Assembly (NCBI GenBank): GCA_047495785.1 | Contig: JBLDXI010000048.1 | Coordinates: 620,001 to 684,000, forward strand | Direction of reading: 5' to 3' | Length of the DNA: 64,000 bases | DNA from: Lepidodermella squamata | Taxonomy: Eukaryota > Animalia > Gastrotricha | In this document: in pieces, positions 43,001-59,404 of the stretch | How the letters are laid out: every line of letters starts with the position of its first letter | Position numbering within the stretch: position 1 is the stretch's first letter | Position numbers and translations under genes: made by a program | Notes under the pieces: generated by a model | Told to the model about the DNA's origin: nothing | Database searches by the model: none | Seen by the model: only the letters and a program-made list of their open reading frames with translations

Positions 43001-45847
43001 CGTTCTTTATATTTCTCGTCCTCTTTTTAATGATGTTCTTTTTTAGGTTCCCAGGGCAGCAAGGGTGAACAAGGTAGCCAGGGTTCTAAAGGCGCCCAAG
43101 GATCACAAGGGTCTAAGGGTGCACAAGGCAGCCAAGGATCCAAGGGTGAACAAGGTAAACTTAACATTTATGAGTTTATGAATTTTCAAACCTGTCCGCC
43201 TTCATTTTAGGTTCTCAGGGATCGAAGGGTGCTCAGGGCAGCCAAGGATCGAAGGGCGAACAAGGTATAATAATTGTCTTACGTTAAAATACAGCTTTCT
43301 CATCCGATTATATTCCATTGCAGGTTCACAAGGGTCTAAGGGTGCACAAGGCAGCCAAGGATCCAAGGGCGAGAAGGGCGACAATGGCACTCCTGGCTCT
43401 CAAGGATCTATCGGTAATATATATATTCTCTCATTGTTTGCTTGACTATGTTTGCGTTTTTATCAGGTCCGATCGGCCCAATGGGACCTCAAGGCTCGAA
43501 GGGTCAAAAGGGAGATCAGGGCTCTAAGGGTGCTCAAGGTTTGCAATCGTAAATGCCGACAAGCAGCTTGAAACTGTTTTGCCTTTCAACAGGATCTCAG
43601 GGTTCGAAGGGTTCCCAGGGTTCGCAAGGATCTAAGGGATCTCAAGGTAATTGATATTTGTATTTATTCTATCAGTTTTCATTTAATTCTTCTTGCTCTG
43701 TTCTAGGCTCACAAGGCTCTAAAGGTGCTCAGGGATCCCAGGGTTCGAAGGGTGACCAAGGCAGCCAAGGATCCAAGGGCGCTCAAGGTATGAATCCTCC
43801 TTCCATGTGACAAATTTTGCAATATTTATTGTCTTCTGTTACAGGATCTCAGGGTTCAAAGGGTGCTCAAGGTAGCCAAGGTAGCAAGGGTGACCATGGC
43901 AGCCAAGGCTCGAAGGGTGCTCAAGGATCACAAGGCTCCAAGGGCGATCAAGGTTTAAAGTTTTTTATTTTAATTGATCTATTTCTCTAATGATTGTTTC
44001 TTGCAGGCTCTCAGGGTTCCAAGGGTAACCAGGGTAGCCAAGGATCAAAGGGTGAACAAGGTTAGTATGCCTATGATTGGCATTCGATCTATTGTAACTT
44101 GACTCTTGTTATTAGGCCCCTATGGATCGAAGGGCGACAAGGGCATTGATGGATCAACTGGTCCTACTGGTCCTACCGGCCCTCAAGGTAATTTGCTCTC
44201 TTTTGTGGTAGATTGTTGAGATTTCATCGCAATTTCATAGGCTCTAAGGGTGCGGATGGTGCGACTGGTCCTAAGGGTGAACCTGGCGCAATGCCTCCTA
44301 ACAACCCCGGCATTCCTGGTGGAGATGGCGCGAAAGGTTTGTATTAAACTTGAAAAAGCGGTGTCTCGTCAATTTTTACCATCAATGCTCAGGTGACAAG
44401 GGCGAACGTGGACCCATTGGTAATAGCTATCCGCCAAATCATTTGATTTTTTGATGAGTTCTGTTACCCTATAGGTCCTATCGGCAACACCGGTCCCATC
44501 GGTCCTCGCGGTTATCAAGGCTCGCAGGGTTCCCAGGGTAGCCAAGGTGAGTTTGTTTTTGGCCTTCCTGAAAATTGATTAAATTCACTTATTTTCACAG
44601 GTTCTCAAGGCTCCAAGGGTCAAAGGGGTGACATGGGCTCCAAGGGTGATCAAGGAAGCCAAGGTTCAAAGGGCGCACAAGGATCTCAAGGCTCTAAGGG
44701 TGAACAAGGTTCTCAGGGATCAAAGGGTCATCAAGGATCGCAGGGATCTAAGGGCGAACAGGGTTCTCAAGGCTCCAAGGGTGCCCAAGGTTCTCAAGGA
44801 TCGAAGGGTGATCAAGGCAGCCAAGGCTCGAAGGGCGCGCAGGGTTCTCAAGGATCTAAAGGCCAACAAGGCAGCCAAGGTTCCAAGGGAGAACAGGGCT
44901 CACAGGGCTCTAAGGGCCACCAAGGTTCGCAAGGATCTAAGGGCGAGCAGGGATCGCAGGGTTCGAAGGGCCATCAAGGCTCACAGGGCTCTAAAGGTGC
45001 TCAAGGTTCACAAGGCTCTAAAGGTGAACAGGGCTCGCAAGGTTCCAAGGGCCACCAAGGTAAGAAACGCCTTTAATTTCTTACATTCCTGAGTCTCATT
45101 ATTCGTCCTCGACAGGTTCACAAGGCTCTAAGGGAGACAAGGGCGATCAAGGTTCCAAGGGTGCTCAAGGTATGTTTCAATTGCTCGTTTCTTGAATTTA
45201 GGTTCAATTTGACAATGTTTCTAGGTCCCCAAGGTCCGCAAGGTCCTCAAGGCCCACAGGGTCCGCAAGGTCCCCAGGGTCCACAAGGCCCGCAAGGCCC
45301 GCAAGGCCCGCAAGGTCCTCAAGGTCCGCAAGGTCCACAGGGTCCTCAGGGCCCGCAGGGTCCGCAAGGTCCTCAAGGCCCGCAGGGTCCCCAAGGCCCA
45401 CAAGGTCCTAGAGGTACGTTATCTTTTTCTCTGCTTGAGGAATCTATGCTACCTCATTTTTCAAATCACAGGCTTCCAAGGTAGCAAGGGAGCTTCAGGC
45501 ACTCAAGGCCCCAAGGGTGATCACGGCGGTCCCGGCTCCCGTGGTCCGACCGGTCCTCAAGGCTCAAAGGGTGATCGAGGTAAGTCATTCGATTTTCCCG
45601 CTTTCACCTGATCTAATTTTTCCAATCCCCCAAAGGTTGCCCTGGCGTTGGAAAACGAGGTCGCAGGGGTCACACTGGCCCTTGTGGTCCTCCTGGCCCA
45701 CCTGGCCCACCATCGGCGTGCGACGACCCGAGGAAGCTCCGCAAATTGGTCGCTGATCTCTTGAACGAACTTCTTGCCAATGTTTTCGACGATTCCGACG
45801 AAGTGCGGCCACCCAACTACAACGGCGGCAGCAGGTTGAAAATTTGA
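25060..45847 (+). CDS. Giant secreted collagen-like protein: signal peptide, furin site, 16-Cys domain, very long Gly-X-Y region, short C-terminal helix
   Basis: Hydrophobic leader and RERR in Cys-rich exon 1 (to 25957). Many phase-1 exons then encode Gly-X-Y. The last exon (45636-45847) reads GCPGVGKRG...[34 protein letters not shown]...LKI*. Confidence 0.93.
27600..45170 (+). repeat. Coding 27-nt repeat (GSQ-GSK-G[A/E/Q/D/H]Q) interrupted by short introns
   Basis: Directly visible. The peptide is conserved while synonymous positions vary widely. Confidence 0.97.
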
Positions 45848-49562: not shown

Positions 49563-52500
49563 TCAATCTTCCTCGTTTACTGCATCCAATGTCTTCAGCC
49601 TTTGATGGTGTTCTTCCAAAAATCTACGGTAATAGGATGCAAAATAATAGATAATTGGCTGAAAGTGCTCACCTCGCAGTTTCCTCTTGCCCAATTCTTC
49701 TCAACGCCTCAAGAAAACCTTTCCATTCGGCAGAATCGGGATCGGCAGAAACGTATTTGTAAAGCGTTTGGAGGCGCTCCGAATGGGTAGGCTGAAATAA
49801 AAATCATACTTTGAAACAGACTGTTTGATTCTCAGAGATAATACCATGTTCGTGATGACACGATTTTCTTCACAACTTATAACTCCATTTTCTATTAAGT
49901 GATGTTGCAACGTTTGGAAATCGATTGATTCAATCAGTCGTTTGAAAGATTCAGAAATCTTGCCACTAACAGCTTCTATCTTCTTTCGTACATCTTCTGC
50001 TAATATAGTGTCGCATCGCTTTTCGAACTCCTCCGAAAGGATTCTGTAACAAAGATTCAAATATCACTTCCTGGAATTTCTTGCAAAGACCTTAGCAATG
50101 ATTTAGCGTAGACTTTCAAAGCCCAGCAAAACTCTTTCCACGTTTTAACGCTTTTGCTGACGTATGCACCAAACAGCTCGTCCATTTTGTCTTCATCTTC
50201 GACCTGGATAAAAAAATGTAGGACTAACGTGCATAGCATTTTCTATCACCTTAGCATCAATGGTAGCCAATTCATCTTCTTTTAAAACTCCCAGAGCTTT
50301 TAGTACATTTCGAAAGGGTTGCATTTCAAGTTTGCTTTTGAACGTTTCCTTAACCCCTTTGAGAGTAGCAGATATCGCACGAAGTTGCTTGAAAGATAAA
50401 GATGAGTACGAAGACGTTATTCATAAAAATACCAACCTTTTTTTCGTCATCAATCTGTTCGTTCCACCAGTTTTCGGATAATGAATAATATTCACTCTCT
50501 GAGGAGCCAGAGAGTGAATGAAGTGTCTGATGACTTGACCAGCTGCTAATTGATTGCCTTGGTTAATCAAACGCTTGCGATAGTTATGAAACACAAGATT
50601 GCTGATATATACTTACGAGATATTTTTAGACAAGGAAATGCCACCCACAGCGCTCTCATTGACGGGCTTGGCACTGAATTTTTTCATCAGCATTTCCTCT
50701 ACCTCTTTATGGCCAGTTGCGTGAGCGTAATCAACTGCTGTTCTGCCGTCCTTGTCGGGCGTGTTGACGTCTACATCGCAGTCCTCAGCAAGGAACCGAA
50801 CGAGCTCAATATGACCACCCAATGCGGCAAGATGTATTGGCGTTCGACCATACTTATCTGCAACTGTTACATCCATCTTCAGTTCGCTAACGAAACGCCG
50901 AGCTAAATCCAAGTAACCATTCGATGAAGCGAAATGCATTGGCCCCCAACCGAAGTTATTTACTGCTCCAGAATTAACATTGAATTTTTCGACGAGCGTA
51001 AAACACATTGCGGCGTCGCCACGCCTAGCAGCCTCTAGCAGGGGTGTCATACCTTCGTTGTCACTGTGATCAACTTTGGCTCCATACTCACTGATCAACA
51101 ACTTGACCAATTTATCGTTGCCACAATGAACAGCGTGATGTAATGGCGTCCAGCCATTACTATCGGCGGAATTGACATTCGCTTTAAACCTGATCAGCAG
51201 CTTTGTTACTTCAGTTTGATTATTTCTGACAGCTTCGTGCAGTGGCGTCTGTCCACCAAAGCCTACAGATTTAACATCACTTTCATACTTATCGATTAGA
51301 ATATTGACGACTTCTATAAGACCATTGAAGGCGGCATAGTGCAATAGGGTTCGCCCATCGTTGTCCTTGACGTTAACACCTATGTTATCGATTAGATTTA
51401 CCAATTCCTCATTATTACCAGAAGCTGCGGCAGTAAGTAGGCGGGACTCAGCTGAATCAGAGTTCGAATTTACGTCGATGTTTCCCGTTGGATCGTCAGT
51501 CTTAGCATCTGATTCAGCATTTGCCATCTGGGTGTTATTTAAGGGTCCCCCAAAGGAAGGAATCTCATTTTCTTTCTGGCTTCTCAGATGATGAGCGATG
51601 TTTTTCACGATCGCATCATGGCCGAATTCAGCAGCGCAGCGCAATGGCGTCCATCCCTTGTAGTTTAATAACTCACAATCAGCCCCATACTGCTCGATCA
51701 ACAATTTGACAACTTCAATGTGACCTTGAGTTGAGCGGTAATGTGAAGCAGCGAGGTGAAGTGGCGTCAAACCCTTCTCAGCTGCTGCGTTGACTTCCGC
51801 TCCGAGCTCATCGATCAGAAACTTGACGACTTCAGTGTGGCCTTCACGAGCAGCATAATGTAACGGTGTCAAGCCATCCTTATCCATCGAGTTGAAAATA
51901 CTTTTGCAAGTGGCAGCATTAGTTCTTGCTTGGATTTTGCCAACAAGAAAGCGTAAAATGTCCATATTACCCTTTTCTGCAGCGCCGTGTAACAGTGTAA
52001 CGCCTCGCCAGTCAGCAGTATTAACATCAGCCTTGAAAACCTCGACAAGCAGCTGCGTCGCGGCGAGTTTTTCATTTCTCACAGCAGTGTTCAACGGAGT
52101 ACAGCCAGCCTTATCCTTGCTGTCAACGTCTAATTTGAAGCAGTCAACTAGTAATCGCATCAATTCCACATTCCCAAGACATGATGCGTGGTGTAAAGCT
52201 GTCCAACCTCTGCGATTAAACGCTTTGACATTAGCATTGTAATCTCTCGCAAGAACCTGCACCATTTCTACCTTGCCAGCACGAGCTGCAACAAGCAGTG
52301 GAGTATTACCTACATAATTCCTTGCATCAATATTTGCACCCCGACTTGCCAATAGTCCCACAATGTCGGCGTGACCTTTCCGTGCAGCACAGTATAAGGC
52401 AGTCTGTTCGTGATCATCCGCCGCATCCATGTCAACATCCGTCTCCGTTACCAGGAAGCGAACTATTTCTGAATTACCTTCCTCTGCAGCCAGGTGCAAA

Positions 52501-54791
52501 GGGGTGACGTCTCTATCAGTTTTTGCGTTAACATCAGTCCAGTATTTTTGGATGAGAAGGCGGGCAACTTCAACGCTGCCATGTTTTGCCGCTAGATGGA
52601 GCAGGGTAGTCCCATCGGAGTCTTCGATTTCTGCGTCAAGGTTTAGATTGGGATCAGACAGAAGCTCTTCTACCTTCCCGGCCTCGTTCTTTCTAACAAA
52701 ATTGAGCATTTCCTATAGGCATAAATAATTATATCAGTGAAAAAGTGTTTAGAAGTATAACATCCTCTTGAAATCACCTGCTCTGCTGGTGATAATGACA
52801 ACCGAACACAGCCATTCTTCGCTGCCATATGGAGCAGGGCAGTCCCATCGGAGTCTTCGATTTCTGCGTCAAGGTTTAGATTGAGATAAGACAGAAGCTT
52901 TTCTGGCTTCCAGGCCTTGTTCTTTCTAACAAAATTGAGCATTTCCTATGTAGGCATAAATAATTATATTATCAGTAATAGTGTTTCAAAATATGACATC
53001 CTCTTGAAATCACCTGCTTTGCTGGTGATAAAGACCACCGATCACAGCCTTTCTTCACTGCCACATGGAGCGGGGTCCGATTGGAGTTTCTTCTGCGAGT
53101 TTCTGCGAGTTTCTGCGGGTTTTGCTCCAGCCCACCATGAATGATATCATCAGTTTTACCAACGCAGCGTTCATCATGGCCGAAAGATTCGGAAACTGCT
53201 TTAAATTGATTTCTAGATGCGGAATCGCAAGACCTGAGCCACAAAACAGTTTTGCGCGATAAATATTCGGCGAAGAGTGGTTCGACTATCCTAGCTATTT
53301 CATAAACTGCTAAAACACTGGCAGCATCTCGCGACTGCAGCCATGCACAGCAAAACCTGTCAACGGCTTCTCTCTTACACTTGGCCAGCGACACTAATTC
53401 GAAGAACTTATCCGGAAAACAGGATGAGAATCGGTGGTTAGAAATAATTTTAAGGCACCGAACAATTTCAAACGCATCAAATGAGCGGCCGAGGCACATT
53501 ATGATCACAGCATCAAAGCCCTCAAAATTGGGACCTCCGCTAATAGAAACTGCTGGGCGATCCAAAAATCTGCAAATGCGGCATTTCTAGGTAAAACACA
53601 TAAAACTAGAAAGGCATCAAATTTTCTTGTTTCACCCTTTTCGCTTGTTTAGGATGTAAGACTGGTACTTGTGCTTCTGGTTGGGCAATTCTGTGGTGAA
53701 AAAGAGATATTGGATCCATCAAATCCAACAACGTGTTATTTTAACGAGTACCTTTTAAGAAATTCGTCGGATGGGCAACGAGCCTTGATGCCAAATTTAT
53801 AAACAGCAGCGCAGAATTTGTCTACTTCCTTATGGTCCAATGAGCGAAGTAGCATGACCATGTTTCGAGTTAGATATATTGCGAATACGGGTTCGAATCC
53901 AGCTGCGATTTCCAAAACCGCTAGCAAAGAATCGTACGTGTTCAATTCCTCCCATTTCTCGCAAAATATGAGAAGAGCAGCGCCACGTGATGTAGTCGAC
54001 GCTACACGATCGAAACATTCGTCTGGGAAACTTGAAAGTATCTTTTCATTGCCGGAATTCTTCATACGGCGTGACATTCCACGAGCATCAAAAGAAAAAT
54101 CGCGGCACTTCCGAATAACCCACGAGATGCTTAATGAAGTGTTGTTGGAGCTAACATTTGATTTATAACTATCAAGATAATCGCATAACAGACATTTTAC
54201 ATCCCGTGATTCACTAAGCAAATCTTTCGTGGGCGATCTTATTGTGACGGTATTCACGTAAGACTTCTGAAAGGAAAATCCATCCATCATGTTAGGAGGC
54301 AAAGTTACGTCACTTGATAAATCAGAAGGCAGTTTAGATGGCTCGATTTTGTTTTTAGAGGATGAATCCATTTTATCCGATGTGGAATCAATTCTTGAAT
54401 CGAAGCATTTGCAAACAGGGCACGTTCCACACTTCTGATAGTGGCCAAAATTTTCGATAATTAGGTGGAATTGTTTCTTCTTCTCATCATCCAGGTTAGT
54501 AATAACGCTTGCCATATCATGTGATAGATGATAAAAAAACCCGAAGTCGAAAGTTTGGACGACTTCAAGAACTGATAACATCGTTTCATTCTTCGGCTGT
54601 TCCATCCATTGCATGCAGAAAACGTATACAGAGGCTCCTGGACTTGTCGTAGCAGTCACCTGCTCACAGAAACCAGTCGAGAAGATGTTACTGGTATCCT
54701 TTGACCTTTTCAACCGTCTGGCAATGCCAAGAGCGTCAAACCGATAATTAAGGCATCCATAAATCAAAGTCTTGAATTCCGGCCAAACCAT
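49563..54791 (-). CDS. 1556-aa protein: three copies of an unrecognised helical domain, ~18 ankyrin repeats, two CARD-like domains
   Basis: Exons 54791-53752, 53690-53636, 53586-53014, 52945-52778, 52712-50617, 50545-50437, 50387-50250, 50203-50091, 50043-49845, 49791-49673 and 49623-49563 total 4671 nt in frame. TPLHxAA ankyrin motifs. CARD-like patterns LKALGVLKEDE..I...K..ELF...WKEFCWAL and LIESID...HLIENGVISCEE..I...W.GFLEAL..IGQ. Confidence 0.8.
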
Positions 54792-54883
54792 CGCTTATGA
54801 TAAAATCCTAAAACGAGTTAAAGAAACCAGAAATTAAAATTAAAATGCACTTTGATTAAATTGTACATGTTCAGAGGTCGGAA

Positions 54884-57800
54884 TCATTTCAAACTTAGCA
54901 ACATATCAAGCGAGTTCTGTGCGAGTTCTCTTTGCGATTTGTCTTCGCGGAATATCAGATTGTTCAGGATCAGTGTTGTGCGCCGTTTTCTTTTGTTAGT
55001 AGATACGGCTAAGCTTTGCATTCCATAGAGGGCCAGAATAGCATCGTCCAATACATCTATATTGGCTCCTAATGATTCAGATTTGGCGCTCTCCATGGCA
55101 TTCAACAGCGCTTCTGATCTATCCACTAATTTACGACTTTTTAGAAGTTCGCTTTCATCAGTGCCCAGCTGAGATATACGAATCGATAGGCATTTGACGA
55201 CATCGGCATTTTTCGGCGTCGATGCTGCCTTTTCAAGAGCCTCTCGCAAATGGTCGATTTTGTCAAATCTCTCGCACAAGTACAAAATATACCCAGTCAA
55301 AAGTCCTTGGGCCCATGGTAGGCCTTGGGGCCCACTATAGGCCCAAGGCAGGAAGTCAATGGGCCCATGGTAGGCCCACGCTAGTTGCTAGGCCCGTTAT
55401 AGGCCCAAAATTTGTTAGGCCCATTATTGGCCCAAAGTTTGTTAGGCCCATTGTAGGCCCAAGTGCCGATGTCTAAATGCCGATTCTTGATCGGGCCCAA
55501 AATAGGCCCAATCGAATGCTTAATTAGGCTGATGAATTGTGTGCATATGCAAATTAGTTAGCTGGAATACAAGCTGAGCTCTCGCGAGGGGGGTCAAACG
55601 TCAAATTCCAGCTGAATTATCAAGATCTGCCAAACGTTGATGTACTGAATACATCACAAGCTCCTCCTGTATAGTCCCTTATCTCTTTCTCACCATGATT
55701 CGTCCCTGTATCCCCTCTCTTCTATGATTGTATCTCTATTTTACCTGGCGGTGAGTTTAGACCTATGTGACCAAGGTAGCAGGTTTTCTATTCCATCCCA
55801 TGCTATGTAATGAAGCATATGCGGTGAACCTTTTAATGCAATTTGATTAATTAAAAAAGATAAAAGAACACACCCGATGTGTTATTTAATTAGGATGCCA
55901 ATAATGGGCCCAAAATAGGCCCAGAACAGGCCCAAAATCCAAGCTTGGGCCCAGGAAAACGGACATACTCGGGCCCAACAAGGGCCCAGCCGGGGCTAAC
56001 ATGGGCCCATCTTAGGCCCAAGGGACAAGGCCTACCATGGGCCTACCATGGGCCCACCGGCTTTTGACTGGGTAAGAAAGTTTGCTTTCCTCTGCCGCTG
56101 CTACGAGGCATTTCGAATAATTCTCGAAAAGCTCCTTCTCACACTCGATGGTTTTTTTCTCCGAGTCACTTGTTTCCTGTAGGCGCATGTTTCCAACGAG
56201 CAGGTCCACCATATACTTCAACGCTTCGACGTCGAACCCTAGTAGATCGTAAGGATCATTGATAGGAATAAGACTTTCAAAGCTCGTATTTGTTCCGACT
56301 AAAGTTTTTAGTGTGCGTAGGTTGAAATTTTGCAACGCGAAGCATACAGCTCGGCTTTTGCACTGCACATCGAGCGCATTTATGTCGAAATTGGTCATAT
56401 GCAGAAGTTTGTCGAAAACGCGCATATCTTTGTTTTTAGCCGCTTCGACGATGAGATCAGCGACTTGCCTTACGATGAATGTTGATGTATCTTCGTCAAG
56501 GAGTTCATTGAGAATTTCGAGACTGAAAAATGACATGCCGAGCCAGATAATTTTATATCTATTTTGTTTACGCCATTCCAAATTTTCCCATGCCTCACTG
56601 ATAACATCAATGTCATCGGAGTAAATTATGTCGACAGGAAGTGGGTCGGCCGGTAGTGAGTCTCGTATATCTCTTCGAAAATCGCTGTTTTTTCCAGTTA
56701 TAAAAGCCTGTTCGAAATCGATTTTTGATAGCTCCGTTGGAAAAGCAATGATGGCGTTAATAATATCCAAGCTCCTTCTGACGGCAACTGCATAGGTCAA
56801 TAGCGTCCAGTCTTCACCCGTGTTATATCTGCGCTGCCTAATCGACTGGATTTCACCAAGAGTGGCAACAACTGCTCTTGTTGGCTGAAGGGAAATTTTT
56901 GCGTTCCGCATATAATCAAATATCGAAATAATTCTTTGTCGCCTCATTGGGATTTTTTTCAGATCGCTGAACATTTTCGTTAAAAGCTTGCCATAATTTA
57001 AAGCGTCGCACTCTTTCAGTTTCTCTAGGATATTCAGATAACATCTGTCATGCAATCCATTATACAGAAGTTCCATTAAAGTTTCCCCATTTGCAACAGG
57101 AGGCTCCGTACACAAGTCCTTCAAGATGTGCGGACAGAGATGTATAAGAGCTTGCTCAAAAAAGTTATCGGCCAGCAGCATCTCCTCTTCCTGGTTAGCG
57201 CTCTCCTTTGTACATGTGCAGTACGCAGATTTCGTAACCAAATAATAAAGGATGCTTCGGATATTTGGCAATCTTTTATCATCGTCAGAAATGAAACGGG
57301 ACAGGACATGCACCCAAATGTTTCCCAGCGTTTTAAACTTCAGCATGGCGATTTTCATACAGGCTGAATGCATGTATGACGCTATGCAGTAACCGGAGCC
57401 GGCTTTTCGCAAAATACACATTTCGTACAGCCGTTCACAAAGAACCTCGATGTCTTGAGAATATTTTAGCCACACAACTCCGAGAATTTCCAGCGGAAGA
57501 CGCTGCTTCGGTGCAAACAATGCCAAAGTTGCGCAAACATCTTGAAGCTTGAAATTTGTTCCAGTGATTTCCAGCGAGAGCTGCTCCTCACTGAATTGAC
57601 GTTCAATAACGCGGTCGACTATAGATTTCTTCTCGGCAGTTAATAGCTTTTCTACAGGGCCCTCGACAATCGCTTTGAAGTTGACATGATCAATCTGGTT
57701 GACTAACGAACGAATTAATAGCGGTAGCGCACAGCTGCGGTGGGCAGCACTGATCAAGTCCACACTGTCGTCGCGATGTTGCCTTAAATAATGATTCTGT

Positions 57801-59404
57801 TTAAGCGACTTCATTACATCGTCCGAAGAGCAGATAGGCCACGAGAAGTATTCGATGAAATTACTCCAAGCGGATGAAGTTGGTAGTCTCAATTTATACC
57901 TCGAGATAATGACGATTGCAAAGTCATCTCGGCGTAGAATGTCAATGTCTACTGATTCACTGAGATTGTAAATAAGAAGCAATTGGCGATTATTACTATT
58001 GGATGAGCATTTGTCTCTATTCGATACCAATGTACTGTTCGTCGGTTGCTCAAGCGAAGATGGCGGACCAGAAATGTTGTACTTTACCCAATATTTCGCC
58101 AAGCGAACAAAGACATCAGGGCTGTTCTCATCTATTAGCGTTCGTATCGCTGTTCTTTTCCCCGAGCCGCATTCACCCCATAAATTGAGAATTTCTGAAG
58201 GTAAAGAGATTTAACAGTTTCAGCAAATTTTGGTTTAGCATAATTGTGCAAATTGGGTTTTGAGCCTGCTAAGAGAAGTTTTACACGTGACTAAGATCCC
58301 GAGCGCGTTCTCCTAAAATCTAACATAATGACAGTAATCTCACAAACTTTTTTCTTTGATAGCTTTTTCCAAACATTTCTCCAGGTTCTCGACTGAATTT
58401 TTTTGATCGATCACCAGGTTGACAGGATGATTGGAGGGGGGCGATTTGAACATCCATGCACAGCCCAAATGAAACTTCGATTTTTCTGCTACGCTGTAAA
58501 ACGCACTTCGGTCGGTTTTAAGTTTGTATACAACGTCGCAAAGCAAGAAGCAACCACCGTTCCACCGTCGATCTGCATCAGTATTTTGCAGAAAATCAAG
58601 CCACTGTATCAGAACGAGTTGCCAAATTTCGGAAGTCTGTTTTAAAAGTGTTTGCAAATCTGGTTCACTGACATTAAGAATGGCGTTCCAAAGCAGCTGT
58701 TCAACTGTATTCACCAGATTCAGCCAAATTTTCCTATTATTGCATTGTCGTGTCATTGCCGATAAAACAGGCACTATTAACAGTGCTCTCAAAACTGAGC
58801 CATCACAGTTTTTGATTACATCGTCAAACTTAGTAATTCGCTCATTTTCATTACAATCGATTGCCTTTTTTGCCCAACCGTCCATTTCATTGAGTAATTC
58901 AACATAATTCAATTGTTCATAAGCTTTTTTCTTCAGCTCAACTCGAAACGATTCCCAAAACGTGAAGGCCATCGAATATTTGCATAACGCACAATTTTGC
59001 CTCAGGCCGCATTTTTTAGCGTGATGCTTAAATAAGTCGAATTTGTTGGATTCCATTTCAGACTTTTCAAGAGCTGCGACCAGTCTATTTGCCAGCTCCT
59101 CTGCTAAATTTCGGAGGCTCTTCGATTTCGAACTGATGTCCAAAACAGCGAACAAGCTTTTGTCATTTAAAGCGGTCCAAAATGCTATATCTTGGAGTTC
59201 ATCTTTTTCAACGGACTTTACACAGAATTTGCCTCGAGGATCTCTTTCAACATTCCTGAACTGAACATGAAAATCATTCGTAAATGCAGCTCGCACATTT
59301 ACATCCGCTCGATCCAATTTTTTCAAAAAGCAATGACTTCGGAAATCCGATCGCATCCAAATGTCAGCGCCAATGACAGAATTAAATATTTCCGATATAG
59401 GCAT
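54884..59404 (-). pseudogene. NLR/Apaf-1-like STAND gene (N-terminal helical domain, NB-ARC-like, degenerate ankyrins), disrupted
   Basis: Walker A GECGSGKR (~58177-58154) is in frame with ORF 58102-56012. Also present: degenerate Walker B LLLIYN, sensor IVIISR, ALPL motif and winged-helix LALFA...LP..IL..VW. A MITE interrupts it at 55292-56072. No in-frame splice was found across 58344-58200. Confidence 0.7.
55292..56072. mobile_element. 781-bp MITE with CCCAG termini and TA duplication (EnSpm/CMC-like)
   Basis: Perfect 12-bp TIR CCCAGTCAAAAG/CTTTTGACTGGG, extending imperfectly to ~33 bp. TA on both sides. Subterminal GGCCCA/TGGGCC arrays. Confidence 0.9.

Follow-up and report, generated by a model that had tools for sequence, protein, structure and literature searches.

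The head of an NLR-like or Apaf-1-like protein is often a death fold, and such heads set how these proteins relay their signal. In Apaf-1, CED-4 and Dark the head is a CARD, placed before the NB-ARC NTPase. RIG-I and MDA5 carry tandem CARDs, ASC bridges PYD to CARD, and the CARD-only and PYD-only proteins consist of a single small death-fold domain. In the coral Acropora, architectures combining a death fold, NB-ARC and ankyrin, TPR or WD40 repeats have been described (PMC4083563), and in placozoans hard-to-detect 'death-like domains' lie on expanded Apaf-1 paralogues (PMC6321704). In the fungal NWD2/HET-S system a STAND protein and the product of the adjoining gene have a common short N-terminal signalling module (PMC3321046). 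Here we describe a locus of the gastrotrich Lepidodermella squamata that can be compared with all of these. It lies in a stretch of 64,000 nucleotides (the window, C48:620001-684000; contig JBLDXI010000048.1), where two neighbouring genes on the minus strand, called here gene 1 and gene 2, carry a helical domain of ~125 amino acids, called here domain X.

The closest likeness is to the animal NACHT/NB-ARC repeat proteins of corals, Hydra and placozoans, which also join a death-fold head to a STAND NTPase and a repeat array and are also expanded in a lineage-specific manner. The difference is that the X head is distinct and invisible to Pfam, and that X occurs also in stand-alone genes and in a triple array without an NTPase. 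We think it rather probable that X is a lineage-restricted, fast-evolving CARD-like family heading NB-ARC-ankyrin STAND proteins, that X domains may recruit partners by homotypic X-X contacts, that gene 1 is a diverged paralogue of this class and that gene 2 is intact. Nothing is overturned by this, as comparable architectures are known from corals and placozoans; what appears new is a lineage-restricted X module in a known receptor class, together with an unusual triple-X, ankyrin and tandem-cassette architecture.

Domain X and its predicted fold

Three copies of X are encoded by gene 2, a multi-exon gene on the minus strand. Copy 1 (54423-54791, minus) runs from the initiator ATG at 54791 to an end reading CGTCPVCKC. 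Copy 2 (53763-54140, minus; 142 bits) lies on the same exon past a Ser-rich linker of ~90 amino acids, and copy 3 (53149-53529, minus) lies on the next exon (53014-53569), past a phase-2 intron of 182 nt. The initial annotation had proposed three shared copies in the ankyrin gene, and the comparisons bear this out. By blastp, residues 1-134 of exon A match residues 206-339 of exon B with 36% identity (E 4e-18), and residues 17-134 of exon A match residues 6-121 of exon B with 29% identity (E 1e-12). A single copy used as the query against the six-frame translation of the whole genome (121 Mb, 151 contigs, an intron-bearing animal) recovers the other two copies at E 4e-14 and 3e-8 together with four further loci, and in the same six-frame translation the X profile finds the gene 2 copies at about E 1e-50. 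By these comparisons the three copies are real, beyond chance expectation.

In the conserved columns of the family alignments, helix 1 carries a Cys, F-D-A is followed some 20 residues later by an F, and FC..W and N-E-(S/T)-I-L-x-V are kept as well. The motif quoted in the initial annotation (C..sFDA..., F...V, FC..W, L.V.E) corresponds to these columns. The Cys residues in helices 1 and 4 are conserved, and the three gene 2 copies, mutually 28-38% identical, have kept every core residue of the family. Cys clusters had also been noted at the domain end, which holds for copy 1 of gene 2, for the head of gene 1 (open reading frame, ORF, E) and for a neighbouring gene at C48:690.6 kb, but not for copies 2 and 3 of gene 2, which keep one Cys; in the MAFFT alignment the Cys tail is missing from about half of the X members.

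The AlphaFold2 (AF2) model of X, built on a 12-sequence alignment, has seven helices, with a predicted local distance difference test score (pLDDT) of 90.7 and a predicted template-modelling score (pTM) of 0.83. The structural comparison was done with VIA-align, exhaustively against 48,161 PDB representatives. The top 13 matches are all CARDs, and PYD, DED and DD come next. The best match is the caspase-9 CARD (5wvc_D, Z 10.9, 96 residues, 2.1 Å), and other CARDs matched are those of Apaf-1 (Z 10.0), CED-4 (Z 9.5) and RIG-I CARD2 (Z 9.5), so that the CARD superpositions span Z 9.5-10.9 over 89-96 residues at 2.0-3.1 Å. The top 50 are nearly all death folds and cover the whole domain (83-96 residues at about 2-3 Å). 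Foldseek places the same structures first, with probability 0.99-1.0 and a target-normalised template-modelling score of 0.76 for RIG-I CARD2 and the Apaf-1 CARD. In the model, then, X forms a compact antiparallel six-helix bundle that superposes on solved CARD, PYD, DED and DD structures.

The genomic context points the same way: in several paralogues X lies directly before the NB-ARC NTPase, at the place of the CARD in Apaf-1, CED-4 and Dark. Because the match list is homogeneous, the coverage extends over the whole domain and the context agrees, the best reading of the model is that X belongs among the death folds as a divergent member, nearest to CARD, to whose six helices it adds a seventh and, in certain members, a His/Cys tail. 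A divergent death fold had been among the suggestions of the initial annotation, and the best structural matches, almost all CARDs, speak for it; no clear match to an unrelated known domain was found.

The X profile detects 13 loci in the genome. Five are X-only genes of ~125-160 codons that open with X (two on C9, and one each on C34, C2 and at C48:690.6 kb), and four head STAND proteins. One of the latter (L021, C54:3988 kb) is a single frame of 1068 codons with an N-terminal X, a weak NB-ARC and ankyrin repeats. In another (L024) Pfam finds an NB-ARC (E 1e-13), which is accompanied by ankyrin repeats and a winged helix of the Apaf-1 type, and X is encoded by the exon immediately before. The remaining two (L022 and L023, C19:2904 kb and 2931 kb) combine X with a P-loop and ankyrin repeats. 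NB-ARC itself is expanded in this genome, with 64 six-frame matches, at least 48 of them above the Pfam cut-off. The Walker B sequence is VLDN in three of the four X-headed NB-ARC paralogues (L021, L022 and L023) and VLDD in most other aligned paralogues; it may be that the nucleotide cycle is altered throughout the X-headed subgroup.

Outside this genome the family is very rare. A full HMMER pass of the X profile over 1.84 billion representative proteins (E<=1e-3) returned four proteins only (P0001-P0004), unnamed singletons from Logan or ENA assemblies. One of them, P0003 (252 amino acids), resembles the C2 copy of this genome and lies on two metagenome contigs (ERZ27333047 and ERZ23486787; L029 and L030), where its neighbours are genes of eukaryotic type (CD36, a protein kinase, TPR proteins); these contigs probably stem from a host related to this animal. 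The X family thus appears to be present in at least one other, related species and to have been kept under divergence, and since the relatives elsewhere have diverged yet keep the motifs, selection on X can be argued. A word-index protein search with the family alignment, which covers proteins of 0.55-1.75 times the query length, gave no match, and neither did the ESM Atlas for an X-only protein.

Gene 1 and its diverged head

The open frames of both genes form a chain on the minus strand in the ORF listing of the window. Gene 1 takes up ORF E (58340-59404), ORF D (56012-58102) and ORF C (54884-55300). Its first exon (58348-59404, minus) ends with the donor GAAAAA|GTTTGTGAG in phase 1 and is joined in frame, over an intron of 153 nt, to the exon of ORF D at 58194. 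The second exon starts with a degenerate NB-ARC and winged helix (57320-58194, minus), delimited with an NB-ARC profile from the same genome; it opens with the P-loop LWGECGSGKRT (58151-58177, minus) and has a Walker B equivalent, LLLIYNLS, at 57959-57982 (minus). The segment WNGGCFLLC at the end of ORF E was considered as a decayed P-loop and rejected, as the real one opens the next exon. The remainder of the exon (56075-57319, minus) is helical, with stretches that are ankyrin-like by eye only and on which Pfam is silent. It is followed by a miniature inverted-repeat transposable element (MITE; 55292-56072, unstranded, 781 bp) and by the displaced 3' part of this last exon (ORF C; 54884-55291, minus), which ends in the stop at 54884.

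How far does gene 1 still resemble a working NB-ARC protein? Pfam NB-ARC gives no match to it. A profile of 23 NB-ARC paralogues of the same genome matches it from the P-loop to the winged helix at 37.6 bits (E 7e-14, for one target), through P-loop, RNBS-B, GLPL and winged helix, and hhalign gives the winged helix a probability of 80%. The upstream gene had been taken for an NB-ARC relative, and this profile upholds the assignment though Pfam misses it. The catalytic and switch residues are a different matter. Walker A reads GKR in gene 1 against GK[ST] in 23 of 23 paralogues. Walker B reads LLLIYN, with the acidic residues lost, against hhhhDD or hhhhDN in the paralogues. GLPL is replaced by ALPL, and the MHD position holds Ala against His in nearly all of the 23.

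The MITE has terminal inverted repeats of 35 nt, a TA target-site duplication and GGGCC-rich subterminal repeats, and it is without GT-AG ends. Taking out the element together with one TA lets ORF D read on in frame into ORF C (…LSY|ILYL…). With the element in place the frame that enters it stops at 56012, 22 codons in, and 134 codons are lost. Copies on C12, C7 and C15 are 96-99% identical, and because of this identity the family appears to have been active recently; an internal stretch of 73 nt has matches of 81-84% at further loci. Judged by residues and reading frame, gene 1 would be a poor candidate for a working sensor, and it is more likely a local paralogue within the X-NB-ARC class that is decaying or was disabled not long ago.

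At its N-terminus, from the ATG at 59404, gene 1 carries a fourth, highly diverged X-like domain (58967-59404, minus; residues 1-146 of ORF E). That a weak fourth copy opens the NB-ARC gene was also stated in the initial annotation, and the support for it is divided. General searches do not find it: against the X copies blastp gives no significant match (E 1.6), and it is not among the genome-wide X profile matches at E<=1. Targeted tests, which took the head of ORF E as a pre-specified target, are passed. Against the X profile of 12 sequences the score of the domain is 12.3 bits, a value that none of 2000 shuffles reaches (maximum 11.2), nor any of 310 natural control windows of 150 amino acids from the same genes and the window (maximum 5.4 bits). 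With hhalign it aligns to X over 100 columns with P 7e-4, at a probability of only 27%. MAFFT aligns it over the full X domain, with the invariant F21 and F41 and the near-invariant FC kept and the W placed after an insertion of 12 residues. Its tail, HHAKKC-x6-C-x2-C-K-Y, follows the pattern H-x3-C-x6-C-x2-C-x-Y common to the C48:690.6 kb copy and P0002.

The AF2 model of this domain on the family alignment has pLDDT 78, with the insertion disordered, and the fold that it matches best is, as before, that of the caspase-9 CARD (Z 8.0), a result biased by the family alignment that indicates compatibility only. This lower-confidence model shows helices at residues 3-10 and 13-16. The tree groups the fourth copy with the gene 2 copies (87/94 support) on a branch of 4.0 substitutions per site. 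We regard this copy as probably genuine, if strongly diverged. A second X copy further along ORF E, in residues 151-354, was considered and rejected (hhalign probability 0.3%), and this part contains no domain recognisable to Pfam or the ESM Atlas.

Between the stop of gene 1 (54884) and the ATG of gene 2 (54791) there are 92 nt, in agreement with the earlier statement that the genes lie less than 100 bp apart. Fusion of the two by read-through or splicing was considered and rejected. Because the frames differ and all three frames past the only acceptor upstream of the gene 2 ATG meet a stop, gene 1 and gene 2 are, as read from the sequence, separate cistrons. An acceptor-like ttttag lies 16 nt before the gene 2 ATG. 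The same arrangement is met at a gene with tandem cassettes past the window end, described below: for both it and gene 2 an acceptor-like (t)ttt(a)ag is found no more than 20 nt from the start (54792-54883; L004:1128-1413), and an upstream gene on the same strand lies 92 nt away in the case of gene 2 and ~290 nt away in the other. Such short spacers and acceptor-like sites are hints that polycistronic units or trans-splicing may exist in this animal.

The initial annotation had joined the two genes into a paired sensor-adaptor system, and here the outcome is mixed: the death fold, the NB-ARC and the adjacency hold, but gene 1 is without catalytic residues and has a MITE in its last exon. In such a pair gene 1 would sense or scaffold without ATP hydrolysis and would dock via its X-like head on the triple X of gene 2; the tail cassettes of gene 2 would carry the signal onward, and both genes would be co-transcribed as one unit with a short spacer. 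The common strand, the spacer of 92 nt and the ttttag before the gene 2 ATG favour it, as do the targeted tests passed by the fourth copy and its place in the tree beside the gene 2 copies. Degenerate-switch NLR partners exist in other systems. The fungal NWD2/HET-S pair offers a further parallel, a STAND protein with a neighbouring effector that has the same signalling motif (PMC3321046), with the differences that the fungal module is an amyloid motif and not a death fold and that the STAND partner here looks inactivated. What makes a working pair less likely is that the switch of gene 1 looks dead, having lost the Ser/Thr of Walker A, the acidic residues of Walker B and the histidine of the MHD motif, and that the recent MITE, having no GT-AG ends, shortens its frame by 134 codons. 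Its X head lies on the very long branch given above, and intact X-NB-ARC-ankyrin genes exist elsewhere in the genome, with no adaptor identified beside them among their own reading frames, the part examined. We consider a working pair unlikely, and we return to X as a CARD-like family in which gene 1 is a diverged paralogue.

Gene 2 and the neighbouring genes

Gene 2 is predicted to encode three X domains, ~20 ankyrin repeats and a tandem small helical cassette. Its frames are ORF B (53736-54791), ORF A (52972-53565), the short duplicate ORF G (52670-52942) and the ankyrin frame ORF F (50613-52709, 698 codons), all on the minus strand. Exon B extends from the ATG at 54791 to 53752, where the donor AAAAG|GTACTC in phase 2 leads in frame to exon A (53569-53014). 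From there the splice, in phase 0, goes either to a duplicate exon of 168 nt or straight to the ankyrin exon. The duplicate (52778-52945, minus; 56 codons) leaves the frame open whether used or skipped. It consists of the start of the ankyrin exon together with the end and donor of the preceding exon, and the introns on either side of it are near-identical and 65-68 nt long. The ankyrin exon (50617-52712, minus) has ~20 repeats and is well above the Pfam cut-off (Ank_2, E 2e-151, 13 stretches); the apparent stop of its frame falls inside a perfect GTAAGT donor. Ankyrin is the only Pfam family detected when all the ORFs and the 12 X copies are searched.

Six short 3' exons follow (49563-50542, minus), with frame-consistent GT-AG sites and a stop at 49563. 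They are a linker exon (50437-50542), the two exons of cassette 1 (50250-50387 and 50091-50203), the two of cassette 2 (49845-50043 and 49673-49791) and the last exon (49563-49623), all on the minus strand, and both cassettes are split after helix 3. By eye only, the cassettes look CARD-like (L..L...GVL..eE...I, then W..F..AL). Pfam is silent on the single cassette exons, and a half-cassette profile has no CARD match in the PDB. As its predicted exons are all open and its splice sites agree with the frame, gene 2 looks intact.

The cassette occurs four times in the genome, twice in gene 2 and twice in a gene at C48:689.5-690.2 kb. The latter belongs to a second group of genes (L004/L013, C48:689061-692444), 5-7 kb past the window end, where it lies ~290 nt downstream of the X-only gene at C48:690.6 kb. 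This X-only gene, a frame of 160 codons with a tail rich in His and Cys, has a stop codon of its own as well as an AATAAA signal. X and the tandem cassette are therefore fused in gene 2 and split into adjoining genes ~20 kb away. Because they are fused in one place yet split between neighbours in the other, there is indirect evidence that the two modules may work together.

In this, gene 2 and the X-only genes recall ASC and the CARD-only and PYD-only proteins: X also forms single-domain genes, and gene 2 joins X with a different small helical cassette. The difference from ASC is that the second module is CARD-like by eye only, that three X domains and ~20 ankyrin repeats take part in the chain, the repeats lying between the modules, and that no caspase link was found. 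The tandem CARDs of RIG-I and MDA5 are similar in having several death folds per chain, and RIG-I CARD2 is among the best X matches. Gene 2 differs from them in having three copies with long linkers and no helicase.

Elsewhere in the window, the plus strand between ~28000 and 46000 has a GC content of ~0.50, a strong positive GC skew and Gly-X-Y collagen-like repeats (for example, in the frame 45435-45611).

Possible roles of domain X

If X is CARD-like, X domains would bind one another homotypically, as CARDs do. An X-headed STAND protein, once oligomerised, would in this way draw in partners that bear X, namely the product of gene 2, that of the neighbouring X-only gene and that of the tandem-cassette gene beside the latter. 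The X-only proteins could serve as decoys, blockers or bridges. In gene 2 the triple X would raise avidity or act as a seed, and the ankyrin array and the tail cassettes would carry the signal further. The partners of gene 2 would more likely be the intact X-headed genes elsewhere than gene 1. Homotypic binding, the direction of signalling and any caspase output are proposed here by analogy with the known CARD proteins. Peptidase_C14 has five exon matches in the genome, none of them near any X locus.

Several observations weigh against this reading. The Foldseek E-values of the X-CARD matches are only 0.2-1, those of the first-ranked structures being 0.2-0.3, and, by the tool's own caveat, helical models can reach Z 13-14 in VIA-align by chance, so that the Z of ~10 for X is within that range. 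Helix 1 of the model (residues 4-15) is unbroken by DSSP, and a break in this helix is a CARD hallmark. Pfam assigns no family and no CARD match to any of the 12 X members at E<=10, so that X does not reach the cut-off of the CARD profile (PF00619), and the X profile finds nothing relevant among the PDB sequences. All gene models have GT-AG splice sites read from the sequence only and are predictions. Two caspase loci were examined, and to a distance of about 5 kb neither has X or cassette similarity around it; no output was identified. A six-frame scan of the whole genome with PF00619 also gave nothing above cut-off, only two sub-threshold matches, the better of which is a dynein-like frame. 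Death folds in this genome generally seem too diverged or too intron-split for standard profiles.

These observations bear on a second explanation, by which X is a generic helical bundle belonging to some other kind of module, for example a zinc-stabilised regulatory or ligand-binding one, and would not form death-fold-type assemblies. The missing CARD signal at the sequence level, in Pfam and in the PDB profile search, fits it, and so do the conserved Cys residues of helices 1 and 4, the His/Cys tail of several members, the extra helix 7 and the Z scores that chance can give. The same features mark how X differs from CARD in any case: no detectable sequence similarity, a seventh helix, a helix 1 that is unkinked in the best model, an H-x3-C...C-x2-C tail in some members, and only four relatives among the 1.84 billion proteins. 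The composition of the match list, however, speaks for a death fold, since nearly all of the top 50 are of this class, CARDs come first and each superposition covers a whole domain. X occupies the very position that the CARD has in Apaf-1, CED-4 and Dark, and the Cys tail is missing in about half of the members. A generic bundle seems to us quite improbable.

That the triple X is a leftover of local tandem duplication in a decaying cluster, with no present function, is suggested by the duplication debris around it (the pseudo-exon 52778-52945, the MITE-hit neighbour and the duplicated cassette gene 20 kb away), but we regard it as highly improbable because the exons of gene 2 are open without exception, with splice sites that agree with the frame, and because copies only 28-38% identical have kept all core residues, which is unexpected under neutral decay.

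With X taken as a CARD-like family, a bolder proposal may be made, which we hold tentatively and with clear doubt. X would be a fifth, lineage-private death-fold subfamily with a zinc-knuckle tail, forming a closed network orthogonal to the ordinary CARDs, in which X-headed NB-ARC-ankyrin proteins would be the sensors, X-only proteins the regulators and the triple-X ankyrin protein a pre-clustered seed.

In non-model animals many heads are missed by domain databases, and whole receptor classes are annotated as headless. The X family, with 13 loci and four stray relatives, a confident model and clear motifs, could be used as a profile for re-annotating expanded NB-ARC repertoires. The locus, where the fused and the split version lie 20 kb from each other, also offers a compact test case for how new homotypic modules and adaptors originate through duplication and fusion. 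If the private orthogonal network is true, it would mean that the logic of PYD and ASC was invented independently in an animal lineage that branched early or has been little studied.

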